A program made the position numbers and the translations under genes. 64,000 nt of DNA from positions 92,256,001 to 92,320,000 of the forward strand of contig NC_043001.1 of assembly GCF_006345805.1 (NCBI RefSeq). The letters are read 5' to 3'. Numbering within the stretch: the stretch's first letter is position 1; each line of letters starts with the position of its first letter. Of this stretch, positions 24,301-30,300 are shown piece after piece. Under the pieces are notes generated by a model that had not been told where the DNA came from, did not search any database, and worked only from the letters and a program-made list of their open reading frames with translations. The stretch is from Octopus sinensis. Its lineage: Eukaryota.

Positions 24301-27300
24301 GATGATGATGATGATAATGATGATGATGATGATAATAATAATAATAATAATAATAATAATGATAATAATAATAATAACGTATAATAATAACAACGTATAG
24401 AAGGTGGTAGAGGCCTTATACAGCTGGAAAACTATTATAAAAGAACCACCATAGGACTGCAAAAATATCTACTTCAGAAGGAAGGAAAACTGATACAAAT
24501 AGCGGCAAAACACGAGCAAAACTAAAAACTGTTCTCAATATTTAAGGAAGCTGACAAATACGAACAAGAAATCATACCACCTAACAAAGAAGAAGAAGAA
24601 GAAGAAGAAGAAGAAGAAGAAGAAGAAGAAGAAGAAGAAGAAGAAGAAGAAGAAGAAGAAGAAGAAGAAGAAGAAGAAGAAGAAGAAGAAGAAGAAGAAG
24701 AAGAAGAAGAAGAAGAAGAAGAAGAAACAACAAAAGTTATAAAACAAATGAAATCCAAACTAAAAATAGAACAGCAACGAACCATGATAATACGATGGCA
24801 AGAAAAGCCCCTTCATGGCAAATACTGGACTAAACTAAATGCAAAAGAAATAGACAAATAAAAATCCCAGCAATGGTTGAGAAGCTCAGGACTCAAAGCA
24901 GAGACAGAAGGATTTTTAATTGCAGCACAAGACCAAAGCCTCCCCACCAGAAATTACCAAAAACATGTAATGAAAAGAAATATTACAAGTAACTGCAGAA
25001 TATGTGGAGATGGAGAAGAAACAATAAATCATATTATCTCTGGCTGCCCAGTTCTGGCTAAGAAGGAATATATTCACAGACACGACAGAGTTGGGACCTA
25101 TATACACTGGAAGCTATGCCAACATTATGAAATAACAACAGAAAAAGATGGTATAGGCACACACCAGGAAAGGTCACAGAAAACGAGAAAGCAACCATAC
25201 TCTGGGATATGCCGATACACACTGATAGAGAAATTAAGGCCAACAGACCAGATATAGTTGTCAGAGATCATGAAGAAAAAAAATGCTTTCTAATTGATGT
25301 ATCAATACCAGCAGATGACAACGTGTCTCTAAAAGGAATGGAGAAACTTTCAAAATACAAAGACCTGGAAATAGAGGTAACCAGAATGTGGAATCTAAAA
25401 ACGGAAACAATTCCTATCATAATAGGTGCATTAGGCATGATAAAAAAAATATTCAGACAAATACATAACAAAAACACCAGGACTTACAAACACATATAAC
25501 ATACAGAAAATTGAACTACTAGGCACTGCACACATCCTACGCAGAACACTTTCCATACAGTAACCATCAGAGCATCACAACAAATCACAGCACATACCCA
25601 AGGCACACAGAGCTGCGCTCGGTAGTGAAGTGAAAGCACGCTATAAAAAATATACTACTGAATAATAATAATAATAATAATAATAATAATAATAATAATA
25701 ATAATAATAATAATAATAATAATAATAATAATAATTATAATAATAATAATAATAATAATAATAATAATAATAATAATAATAATAATAATAATATATCTTT
25801 CTACTACAGTTACAAGGCCTGAAATATGTGGGGAGGAGATAAGTCGATCATAATGACCCCAGTACTTAATTTATCGACTCTGAAAGAATGAAAGACAAAG
25901 TCGACCGCTGCGTAATTTGGACTCAGAACATAAAAACAGGCGAAATATCGCTAAGCATTTTGCCCGGCGTGCAAACGACTCTACCAATAGTGATAGTAAT
26001 AATTCACAGCATAGCTGTTGAAGTTTTGCATAGACATTTTTATACATACCTTCTTTGGCTATTAAGGTGATCTTCATGTGCTTATTTTTCTTACTTATGC
26101 AGAGGACTGTTAATTTACTGATTTCAGTCAAAAACTTGATGGCAATTTCAGAGAATTGATTATTACACGTAACATGGGCTATATAGTATTGCGAGTTAGA
26201 CTTGGATGTGTTCCCACAAGTAATCAAAGTATCATTAATTTTCCAGTACTTTAATTCGTCTTCTTTTTCTAAAGGACATTCAACAAGTGTAACTTCATTC
26301 ACAAAAGCTTCCAAATTACCGACGTCAATGTCAACAAAGCCTGCAGATCCTGAAAAATATGCAACAATAAATCATGAAACAGAAAGAGATAGAAGAGAGT
26401 GAAGTCATGACCTACAAATAATAAATTGTGTCATAAATTGGCAATCTAATCTGACTTCAGGAAATTAAATTAAATACTTACTGAAAACCGTTATATTAAC
26501 CATGCTAGCATGTTCGTCTGTTTTGCAAACAATATTAAAACGACCATCAGATGGTTTGACAGGGTAGATAGTCAGAGACGATTTACGTAATTTAAAATTA
26601 CATGTACTGTAAATACGCCCTGGAAATTTTGTATGGTCCTTAGTTGAATCAACACAATATACATACGATGCCAGTACTGCGCCGTCTCCATAGTACCATA
26701 TCAAAGTGGTGCTTTCGCCTATTTCACAGATCAATCGTAAAGTTGACCCGGCAGGAACAGTGTCGCGGTGATCAAAAATAAAAAGATTTCCAACATCGTC
26801 TGCAATAGAAAATAGTACATTAACATCGAAATAATATTACAGAAATATACTGTTTAGTGATATTCGAGAGAAATGAGACGAAAACAGATGACCGATGTCC
26901 AGTATTATTGTTATGGCAATGGTATGTAATATACATGTTACAGACACTTATATACGATACAGTATGCAGGAATGTACAAATACACAACTACGTAACTTGC
27001 TTCTAAATACTGGAAAGTTACTAACTATATGTTTTCTGAATTATCTTGGGCGGAGGGCAATGAGCTGAAGAATTGACAAAATGTGTTATTTAATTAAATC
27101 ATAAAATTATTACATTTTAAGTTCAAATTTTAGATGAATGAATTTAATTTTCATTACAGCCTGATTAATGAAATAAACACTTTTCTACAAGACTTCTCAC
27201 TTCATCAGAAGTTCAGAATCACTATTAGCAACATCTTTCATGAAGTATCACCTTCAAACTTCCTGGATACTAAAGAGGAAGATCAAAAGTTATTATCTGA

Positions 27301-30300
27301 ATCCGAAAGTTATATGATACATACACACGCACAAATTGCATCACACACACACACACACACACACACACACCACACACACACACACACACAAACACACACA
27401 CATACGATGATGGCTTGCAAATTTATTCATAATATGCTCCGGCAGATTCGAACGCAAATGTGTTAATCACTGTTGTTTTTGCCACAGGAAAACAGCTTCT
27501 CCTTCACAATGACAATGGGTTAATATTGCCCTCGATTCATTAATATAAGGGATTCTGGGACACTGTTAATTCAATATATTGAGTCTCGTTGCCAGAAGAC
27601 CTGAGCCAATGAATGTAACGGAAGCCGATCGCCTTGTTTATAATTTCAGTGAGCAGGTTTCAGATTATTGCTGATAATAAATCATAAAATGCACGTTGAA
27701 CGCTGAGATGTGAAGCGATTATTTGCATATTTATTCTTAATACGTTCTGTATGTGCAGCAAATTCAAATGCAAATATGCTGTTCACTGTTGTGTTCGTCA
27801 CAAGGACACAACTTCTGCTTTACGATAACAATGTGTTCATGAAATACTCGACTCTTTAGTTCAAAGGTTCTAGGAAACCGGTGTTGACGAAAACTGCATA
27901 CAAGCCTGTCAGATGAGTAATACTTTTAATTCTAGCCATGTCACATTTGTATCACATTGATTCTACTTGATAATTACATTAAGGGGAGAGGATTCTATGG
28001 AATATTCGGACATATGAAGTCCATGTCATCTCCGATAGAACCTCTATTCATCATATGTAAAGATTATGAAGTCCTCTGATATAAAAAAAAAACCTCCAAT
28101 CGTTGCACGATCAACATCAAACACCTAACAATTAAGCAATTAATTTGGCATAATTTTGTAACTTTTGTGCAAATTAGTTCCTAGTTCTATAAGAGATGAC
28201 ATGTACATTGCAAAATTCTAAACCATCTCTATACAAATATTATCCATGAATTAGTACTAGAAGCTCTAGGATTTTGGATCGAAAAATAGTCACGCCGAGT
28301 TCAAGATTATTAAAAGATTATTAAAAGAAGTTATATCTGAATAATTACGATTGGTGCAGGAAAATAACTACTTTTTTTTGGTAACCAACATTACCTTAAA
28401 ACGAAATTTGTACCAATATTTGTAATGAGATTCCCTGAAGAAAATATCTCTGCTTTTCTGGAATTGCTTTTGATTAGCATTTCCAAACCTATTTAAAAGG
28501 AAACTGTAAAAGATTTCTGGATGATTAACTTTTTTTTTCAGAAGAAATAACACCTCGTAAGATTTCTTAAATTCGTAAATTGCATTCGGTTTCCATCTAG
28601 TTCACTTGAAAATTAATGAACGGGAACTTCCTTCATTGGAAATTTTTGCAATTAAAGAAAATGAAACAGGTACAATCAACCGATGGTTATACTTTAGATC
28701 TTGCTACTCACCCTACATGAAAAGGAATAACCCTTTGAATTTAGCAGATGCTTATTTTGAAACAAATTACGGGCACAAATGGACGAGAAAAATTAAATAT
28801 ATTTCTTTAGGAACAACAGCACCAAATAATCAAAGTAAATTAATGCCATAGCCAAAGAAGAAATCTCAATCTCTGTCTTACCGAGAAACCCTCACAATGA
28901 CGGTGAAGAGAAAAATGCAAATATATACACATTCCACGTGTAGTTACCCAGCATCCTAGAAACCATGCCATTTTACATTCGGCCAAACGATACATTCCAA
29001 GTCTGCACCAATCATCAAATCTCAGAAAAGTGATCAAAGAATCGAAAGCCGAAGACAACCACCAAATCTTAAAAGACTCATAACAAAGACGAAATTCACA
29101 TAAGAAGAAAATTTAGCAGGTAACAAAAACTGCGGAGACCTTCATAGTGGTACGTATGAAATAATTGTACAGGTAACGACAAAAAAAAAAGAAAATAAAA
29201 TGGAATGAATTGAAGGCCAATGCACATATGAATCGCAAACCAAAAAAAAATCTTTTTCACTGCATTACATGCCCCAAAAGCAATGAAAATTTTCCATGTA
29301 TGACATCTTGACATTTGTGCAAATGGAAAATTCAAAGCATTTCCTTTTATCAAAATAAAGAAAGAAAATGATCAAATACGAAAGGAAAAAGAAAGTTATT
29401 TCATAAGAATTCTAAGTCGAAACTAAACCGGAATTCATCAACACCGCTAATAAAAACATTTATTTCTATATGGGTTAGACCCATCACACGCTAATTTGAA
29501 AAAAAAAAAAGACTGTAAACAGTGAAAGTGTTTGTACACTGTGAGAAAATTGCCTTCCAAGAGATCGCTTCATTCTGTTCCTTTTGTTTTATAATTTTTT
29601 TTTTATGTAGTTAATTTTTAATTTAAGAAAATCTTTCTTCAAATATATACGCACGCAAACATTATATATGTATATTATATATGTGTATATATGTATAGAC
29701 AGATAGACAGACAGACGGAAGACAGGGAAGAGAGAGAGAGAGAGAGAGAGAGAGAGACGACAGACAGATAGACTGATTGCTTGCCTGCTTGCTTGCTTGA
29801 TTCATTCATTCACTCTTTCTTTCATTCATTTATTCATTCATTCATTCATGACTCCTTCCTAAATCTAAGTCTTGAGTTTATGTGATAAAAATTAAGATTA
29901 AATTAACTATGACTCACTGTATAAAGGCTGAATCGTGAACATAACATTCTTTTGTTTCTTTGTCAGACAGAAGAAGACCAAAGGCGGTTTTGCAGTTAAA
30001 ACCATAACTATTAATGTAGATTCTAGTTTGTGACATGTAACATTTACTACTTTGAACGCTGAGTTTTCCTTGTAATTCACCTTATTACAAGTAGCAACCA
30101 AGTTCTTATTAGACCATTCCTCAAGAAAATCGCCTGGCTCGAATGGACATGTTAATTTTCCGGTTTCGTATACATTAACAAATACAACTCCGCCGTCTCT
30201 ATAACTTATAGGTTCTACTGAAAAAAGAAAGAGTAGAAATAAGAAATGGATATATTTGTTGAAATATTCAACATTGCTGAAATTCCATAAAATATATTTC

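Follow-up and report, generated by a model that had tools for sequence, protein, structure and literature searches.

The window, meaning the whole stretch of DNA that was analysed, comprises 64,000 nucleotides (nt) of Octopus sinensis (NC_043001.1, positions 92,256,001 to 92,320,000 of the forward strand); the element under study is the gene LOC118763564 on its minus strand, which encodes three predicted immunoglobulin (Ig)-like domains (D1, D2, D3), each with a pair of cysteines beyond the canonical one. Translation of the minus strand from 26050 to 30217 gave three open exons of about 100 codons apiece; this interval corresponds exactly to exons 3–5 of LOC118763564, and its limits in the original prediction are the true ends of exons 5 and 3. 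A protein search among 5.8 billion proteins returned three proteins: P0001, annotated as 'uncharacterized protein LOC118763564 [Octopus sinensis]' (397 amino acids, 99% identity); P0002, the O. bimaculoides ortholog LOC106876419 (77% identity); and P0003, a shorter database model labelled O. vulgaris. The exon map (Table 1) is the splice-site solution that reproduces the NCBI model P0001 exactly: six exons, every intron AG/GT, internal exons all phase 1. The six-exon structure with its canonical splice sites is identical in O. bimaculoides; the arrangement of one domain per exon with phase 1-1 boundaries is found in LOC118763564, in the O. bimaculoides ortholog and in the paralog LOC118763527.

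Table 1 Features of LOC118763564 and of the neighbouring paralog in the window, with the codons of the cysteine/tryptophan frame. Positions are those of the window.
Feature	Position	Strand	Description	Evidence
Exon 1	37463..37517	-	55 nt; ATG and first 18 signal-peptide codons (MLRNNWKFLLGTFLYQFL)	tblastn, 100% identity
Exon 2	35645..35698	-	54 nt, phase 1; end of predicted signal peptide and N-terminal linker (IFTEPYEEAYHKFALSS)	
Exon 3	29918..30217	-	300 nt, phase 1-1; predicted Ig-like domain 1 (D1)	
Exon 4	26482..26799	-	318 nt, phase 1-1; predicted Ig-like domain 2 (D2), V-like; F-strand motif SDGRFNIVC	
Exon 5	26050..26349	-	300 nt, phase 1-1; predicted Ig-like domain 3 (D3), ancient duplicate of D1	
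Exon 6	21355..21521	-	167 nt including stop; predicted transmembrane helix (~residues 349-372) and ~23-amino-acid cytoplasmic tail	
D1 codons	Cys 30149-30147, 30089-30087, 30035-30033, 29969-29967; Trp 30116-30114	-	Cys in order: B strand, C' end, D end, F strand	
D2 codons	Cys 26728-26726, 26656-26654, 26602-26600, 26527-26525; Trp 26698-26696	-		
D3 codons	Cys 26278-26276, 26218-26216, 26167-26165, 26101-26099; Trp 26245-26243	-		
Exon 1 of head-to-head paralog LOC118763527 (P0005)	58297..58354	+	Same three-domain architecture; remainder beyond window end	

The N-terminus of the LOC118763564 protein is hydrophobic, and the sequence contains four N-x-S/T sequons and a single strong transmembrane segment. 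The product is predicted to be a type I membrane glycoprotein that crosses the membrane once, in which a signal peptide and three Ig-like domains precede the transmembrane helix and a short tail. Neither a fibrinogen domain nor any other Pfam domain was found in the protein, whose C-terminus consists of the transmembrane helix and the tail. In the tail (P0001 residues 373-397, window 21355-21432) two membrane-near cysteines (C379, C386) and a tyrosine in YLNK are conserved; the cytoplasmic tails of the paralogs are unrelated to it in sequence.

Relatives were collected by an exhaustive HMMER profile search with six domain sequences against 1.84 billion cluster representatives (E <= 0.001). Nine proteins were retrieved, and the family members among them are from octopods only: the orthologs P0002 and P0003; the O. 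sinensis paralogs LOC118763527 (P0005, 396 amino acids) and LOC118763565 (P0008, 303 amino acids); P0004, a fused O. vulgaris model; and a 980-nt Logan contig (run SRR11869385) on which the D1 exon comes from an octopod further removed (identity 73% for DNA, 53% for protein). The marginal matches to generic Ig domains (coral hemicentin-like, E 1.6e-5; lamprey obscurin-like, E 1e-4) lack the extra-cysteine pattern, and no family member from squid, other molluscs or other animals was retrieved among the cluster representatives. P0007 and P0011, a tandem-repeat protein rich in cysteine and tryptophan (E 4.5e-19), were rejected as a compositional false positive made up of 15 short stretches. A word-indexed search with the paralog alignment yielded no new proteins and missed P0008, hence it is lossy. 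The three O. sinensis genes, LOC118763564, LOC118763527 and LOC118763565, lie in one cluster. Judged by these sequences, they appear to form an undescribed, octopod-restricted and fast-evolving family of three clustered type I membrane proteins built only from four-cysteine Ig domains.

Each of the three domains of LOC118763564 contains exactly four cysteines and one tryptophan (P0001 numbering): C60, W71, C80, C98 and C120 in D1 (C-x10-W-x8-C-x17-C-x21-C); C161, W171, C185, C203 and C228 in D2 (C-x9-W-x13-C-x17-C-x24-C); C267, W278, C287, C304 and C326 in D3 (C-x10-W-x8-C-x16-C-x21-C). The four cysteines per domain, with the spacings first reported for them, are thereby confirmed. Across the family (three paralogs, three to four species) the extra pair is kept in 13 of 13 domains, even though non-orthologous domains are only 18-36% identical, and the spacer between its members is exactly 17 residues in 12 of the 13. 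The sole 16-residue spacer is that of O. sinensis D3, in which the C'-D loop (26167-26218) has lost one codon relative to O. bimaculoides (TS-KSNS vs TSTKSNS). The B/F cysteine pair and the strand-C tryptophan are likewise present in 12 of the 13 domains; in D1 of LOC118763527 (exon L002 22655-22957) tyrosine replaces the B-strand cysteine, while the C'/D pair and the F cysteine are kept. An additional cysteine stands five residues past the F cysteine in this domain and in its sister D1 (O. vulgaris model P0004). The cysteine/tryptophan pattern is far beyond chance and recurs in register across every domain of all the orthologs and paralogs found.

The fold was modelled with AF2 for D1 only, with a multiple sequence alignment of nine D1/D3 sequences; those of D2 and D3 were derived by alignment. 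The D1 model (predicted local distance difference test score, pLDDT, 90; predicted template modelling score 0.81) has nine strands, in domain numbering: A, 4-7; A', 10-15; B, 19-25; C, 32-37; C', 39-42; D, 55-62; E, 66-73; F, 80-86; G, 91-99. C24 (strand B), W35 (C) and C84 (F) make up the canonical core; of the extra cysteines, C44 lies two residues past C' and C62 closes strand D, in agreement with the earlier assignment of the extra pair to the C'-D region. A Foldseek search of the model against the PDB gave 22 matches at E <= 0.001, and the best 50 matches listed are almost all V/I-set domains of the immunoglobulin superfamily (IgSF): IgLON5, CRTAM, Dpr10/DIP, ZIG-8, CD96, PD-1, FLT3 and antibody V domains, the best-fitting of which have template modelling scores of 0.6-0.68 at 9-20% sequence identity (E 3e-4 to 2e-3). 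CTLA-4 is not among these 50. At the sequence level, the PDB gave nothing significant with the concatenated three-domain sequence, nor with a domain profile, for which the best match was a T-cell receptor V-alpha domain (E 0.13). On the strength of the model, D1 is taken to be an Ig-like sandwich of the V/I-set, and D2 and D3, aligned to it, probably have Ig-like folds as well.

In this fold, C' and D would be facing edge strands of the two sheets and would run towards the end of the sandwich that carries the BC and DE loops. The extra cysteines would therefore lie on one edge and at one end; as read from the modelled hairpin registers, C44 and C62 should be about 1-2 residues apart in height. 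A second disulfide is thus predicted to join the C-terminal ends of strands C' and D in each domain, and the extra pair is placed and conserved as such a C'-D staple should be, which supports the proposal; the prevailing 17-residue spacing of the octopus domains equals the x17 of CTLA-4. A C'-D disulfide is able to rescue a V domain without Cys23-Cys104 (PMC10641266), a result that D1 of LOC118763527, with the extra pair and without the B cysteine, fits. The cysteines in question might instead be free thiols, might pair as B-C' and D-F, or might form interdomain or intermolecular bridges. Such arrangements find some encouragement in the paralogs, where one domain has five cysteines and another lacks the B cysteine, so that pairing is not uniform across the family. 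The same loss, however, would leave the retained C' cysteine of LOC118763527 D1 orphaned under a B-C' scheme. Moreover, the Ig fold brings B and F together at the core, next to the tryptophan, as in all IgSF members; C44 and C62 share an edge and an end in the model; the extra cysteines always co-occur, with the nearly invariant spacer described above; and CTLA-4 and VHH show a bond of the C'-D type to be feasible. Pairings other than an intradomain C'-D disulfide are accordingly regarded as improbable.

D1 and D3 had been proposed as exon duplicates that share little beyond their cysteine spacing. The first part is upheld: they cross-match by tblastn (E 3e-9, 28-32% identity) and the shuffle z-score is 17; by the same figures, the second part is wrong. 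A neighbour-joining tree of nine D1/D3-type domains separates every D1 from every D3, with LOC118763527 and LOC118763565 as sisters in both halves (bootstrap 90 and 98.5), and the duplication must therefore be older than the three paralogs; as far as these alignments go, it is real and old. Domains of the D2 type form a separate class, with pairwise z-scores against D1/D3 below 6. The equal length of the D1 and D3 exons is incidental: the D3 exon of O. bimaculoides measures 303 nt, because of which its spacer has 17 residues and not 16, and the D1, D2 and D3 exons of LOC118763527 measure 303, 324 and 306 nt.

The motif DVGNL, said to open both D2 and D3, is present in both (residues 138-142 and 251-255); in D3, however, it lies eight residues into the exon, and in O. 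bimaculoides the equivalents are changed to GVGNL and DIGDM. Relatives show D-x-G at this place (DGG, DAGN, DAGT, DIGD), and the glycine is kept in 6 of 6 domain sequences of the two orthologs. DVGNL is thus best described, from these alignments, as one version of a family-wide D-x-G motif, which falls at the A/A' kink of the D1 model. Recent gene conversion as the origin of the common motif was rejected, because its codons differ between the D2 and D3 exons (GTT GGA AAT CTT vs GTC GGT AAT TTG).

Substitution rates were estimated by the method of Nei and Gojobori, with the O. bimaculoides coding sequence built from its locus. For the whole gene the ratio of nonsynonymous to synonymous substitution (dN/dS) is 1.20 (dS 0.094, dN 0.113); by segment it is 0.71 for D1, 1.78 for D2, 1.37 for D3, and 1.98 for the transmembrane segment and tail. 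Between the two species, DNA of the flanks and introns shows 86-92% identity, with about 0.8 gap openings per 100 nt. In a neutral simulation with 120 random substitutions on the coding sequence, the expected amino-acid identity was 0.786 (observed, 0.78); the probability of no stop codon was 0.008, that of keeping all 12 ectodomain cysteines 0.04, and the joint probability of an intact open reading frame with all 15 cysteines and all 5 tryptophans 5e-5. At the intron rate about 9 indels would be expected in the 1.19 kb; a single in-frame one of 3 nt is seen (P ~1e-3). The D1 exon of the distant octopod has kept its splice sites, frame, four cysteines and tryptophan at dS 0.39 (dN/dS 0.79); relative to it, the C'-D loop is the most variable segment, 9 of the 10 positions 45-54 being different. 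The ortholog comparison proposed at the outset thus bears out rapid divergence around a fixed scaffold, with change at about the neutral rate and cysteines and tryptophans retained; the data cannot separate positive selection from strong relaxation.

The reading favoured here, with a probability of about 0.65, is that LOC118763564 encodes an octopod-restricted receptor or ligand of the recognition type, with doubly stapled Ig domains, under diversifying or very relaxed selection. Each domain would be a V/I-type Ig sandwich, its canonical B-F disulfide packed on the tryptophan of strand C; a second disulfide would bind the sheets to each other at their outer edges and close a 17-residue loop of very variable sequence. 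D1 and D3 would derive from the old internal exon duplication, and D2 would be of a different, more V-like type with the same cysteine frame. Amino-acid change would proceed at or above the neutral rate with frame, splice sites, cysteines and tryptophans preserved, and the double staple may let the fold tolerate rapid turnover of its surface. The protein would most likely act in recognition at the cell surface, as a receptor or a ligand, whether in immunity or between cells or gametes. A more specific version is put forward only tentatively and is, as a whole, rather unlikely: that the genes are an octopod-specific tandem family of cell-surface receptors, made up throughout of doubly stapled Ig domains, in which the disulfide-clamped C'-D loop, constant in length, hypervariable in sequence and resembling complementarity-determining region 2, is a recognition surface under diversifying selection, in an immune-type or gamete/self-recognition system invented within the lineage.

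Several results weigh against the favoured reading. The excess of dN/dS over 1 falls short of significance (Fisher p 0.48), so that positive selection is not demonstrated. A full-length AF2 run with an alignment of three orthologs was unusable (pLDDT 33.5). No Pfam Ig model reaches its gathering threshold for any of the three domains: D2 has sub-threshold matches to Ig_3 (19.5 bits, cut-off 30), V-set (18.4 bits, cut-off 26) and ig, at E ~1e-3; D1 has no Pfam match, and D3 only a weak spurious match to an unrelated family. The homology of D2 with D1/D3 is weak in profile-profile comparison (hhalign, E 0.02), with the B, C' and D cysteines aligned in register. A literature search on the four LOC identifiers returned nothing.

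The first of these results also suits a gene of marginal use, specific to the lineage, in which the high dN/dS reflects relaxed constraint and foldability alone is selected, with no diversifying selection. The match between observed and neutral amino-acid identity, the high dN/dS of the transmembrane segment and tail, and a ratio of 0.7-0.8, below 1, in D1 all agree with this. The retention of frame, splice sites, all cysteines and all tryptophans, at the joint probability given above, speaks against it, as do the three paralogs that keep one architecture over long divergence, the intact D1 exon at dS 0.39 and the concentration of substitutions in the putatively stapled loop in the deeper comparison. 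Relaxation of this kind is a quite possible explanation, though not the probable one; if it holds, the gene would be an ordinary uncharacterised member of the IgSF.

The absence of literature, the 'uncharacterized' label and the sub-threshold Pfam matches could also point to a decaying or mis-annotated gene with an Ig-like appearance produced by gene prediction, as could P0003, which skips D1 and truncates D3. Against such an artefact stand the identical six-exon structure and canonical splice sites in O. bimaculoides, the improbability of an open frame under neutrality, the deficit of indels, the confident Ig fold of the D1 model and the common exon and phase plan of the paralogs, and it is judged very improbable indeed. 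P0003 (labelled XP_036359033.1) uses an upstream exon at 57134-57226 (-), about 1 kb from the first exon of the paralog, an extended exon 2 at 35646-35747 (-) and an extra small exon at 35358-35426 (-); besides the D1 exon, it is without the last ~16 residues of D3 (SKKNKHMKITLIAKED, predicted G strand). This model could represent a genuine isoform without D1, driven from a shared bidirectional promoter region, or could be an artefact.

As a lineage-restricted IgSF group, the cluster offers a concrete candidate for recognition in octopus, be it immune or species-specific. No adaptive immunity is known in cephalopods, and few of their recognition receptors are known to have been characterised. 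If the staple is true, the family would also show in nature the C'-D bond that is engineered into antibodies to stabilise them, including a domain without the B-strand cysteine.

In the head-to-head arrangement (window 58297-58354, +; L002 10001-45095), exon 1 of LOC118763527 lies 20.8 kb from the ATG of LOC118763564 and 8.4 kb from it in O. bimaculoides, where the arrangement is syntenic; the exon plan of LOC118763527, with one domain per phase-1 exon, is that of LOC118763564. LOC118763565 follows about 57 kb beyond LOC118763527, and after it a gene for an AMP-binding enzyme. For LOC118763565, a search of the 10 kb upstream of its annotated start did not reveal the D1 exon, which is known only from the fused model P0004. 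Apart from exon 1 of the neighbouring paralog, no tandem extra copies of domain exons were found in the window. Some 1.1 kb upstream of exon 1 of LOC118763564 there is a remnant of a Mos1/mariner-type transposase (38628-39176, +; Pfam HTH_48, E 2e-17). Copies of a dispersed repeat at 30329-30531, 25863-25986 and 20028-20202 flank the domain exons, and the repeat matches several sites of the O. bimaculoides locus at 70-78% identity. In O. sinensis, introns 2 and 3 measure 5427 and 3118 nt vs 1562 and 963 nt in O. bimaculoides (3.3-3.5x); simple repeats within them in O. sinensis are (CA)n at ~27340-27400 and (GA)n at ~29720-29760.

Among known systems, the closest folds are those of IgLON5, Ig1 of Dpr/DIP, ZIG-8, CRTAM, CD96 and PD-1, which have a sandwich of the same A-A'-B-C-C'-D-E-F-G type and are modules of cell-surface recognition; these neuronal and immune V/I-set adhesion domains are 9-20% identical to D1, and none was retrieved by sequence search. 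The immune IgSF proteins of molluscs of the FREP type are distinguished by a C-terminal fibrinogen domain, a FREP feature that is absent in the octopus protein. The CTX/JAM/CAR family consists of IgSF membrane proteins, one of whose defining traits is a further conserved disulfide in a single domain; there, the extra pair is known only from the membrane-proximal C2 domain and is at different strands.

In CTLA-4, Cys48 and Cys66 are on strands C' and D. Human CTLA-4 has two disulfides, Cys21-Cys92 and Cys48-Cys66, both of which link the two sheets and are conserved to zebrafish (PMC12092003). Its cysteine spacing (x26/x17/x25; ectodomain sequence of the identical PDB chain 1i85_C) is close to that of D2 (x23/x17/x24), and CD28/CTLA-4 and the octopus protein alike are type I membrane proteins with short tails; CTLA-4, however, has a single V domain, the ligand loop MYPPPY and a dimerising stalk cysteine, whereas the octopus protein has three domains without these. 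As a relative CTLA-4 was rejected (hhalign probability 0.2%, no homology), and it is an analogue only. In VH and VHH domains the noncanonical pair Cys54-Cys78 (IMGT) spans C' and D; it occurs naturally in camelid VHH and stabilises VH/VHH (PMC10641266). Like the proposed octopus staple, it is an inter-sheet C'-D bond beside the canonical pair. The antibody pair is rare, somatic or engineered, and placed in mid-strand, whereas the octopus pair is germline, present in every domain, and placed at the strand ends by the DE turn; the octopus spacer of 17 residues is shorter than that of VH, and the loop between the octopus cysteines is constant in length but hypervariable in sequence. Of the distinct Ig subtype proposed by the original prediction, an undescribed octopod family without a Pfam match at threshold therefore stands, but a staple geometry of its own does not, being found already in CTLA-4 and VHH. 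By these analogies the C'-D inter-sheet staple does not amount to a structural novelty; the novelty lies in an octopod family that carries the candidate staple in every domain.

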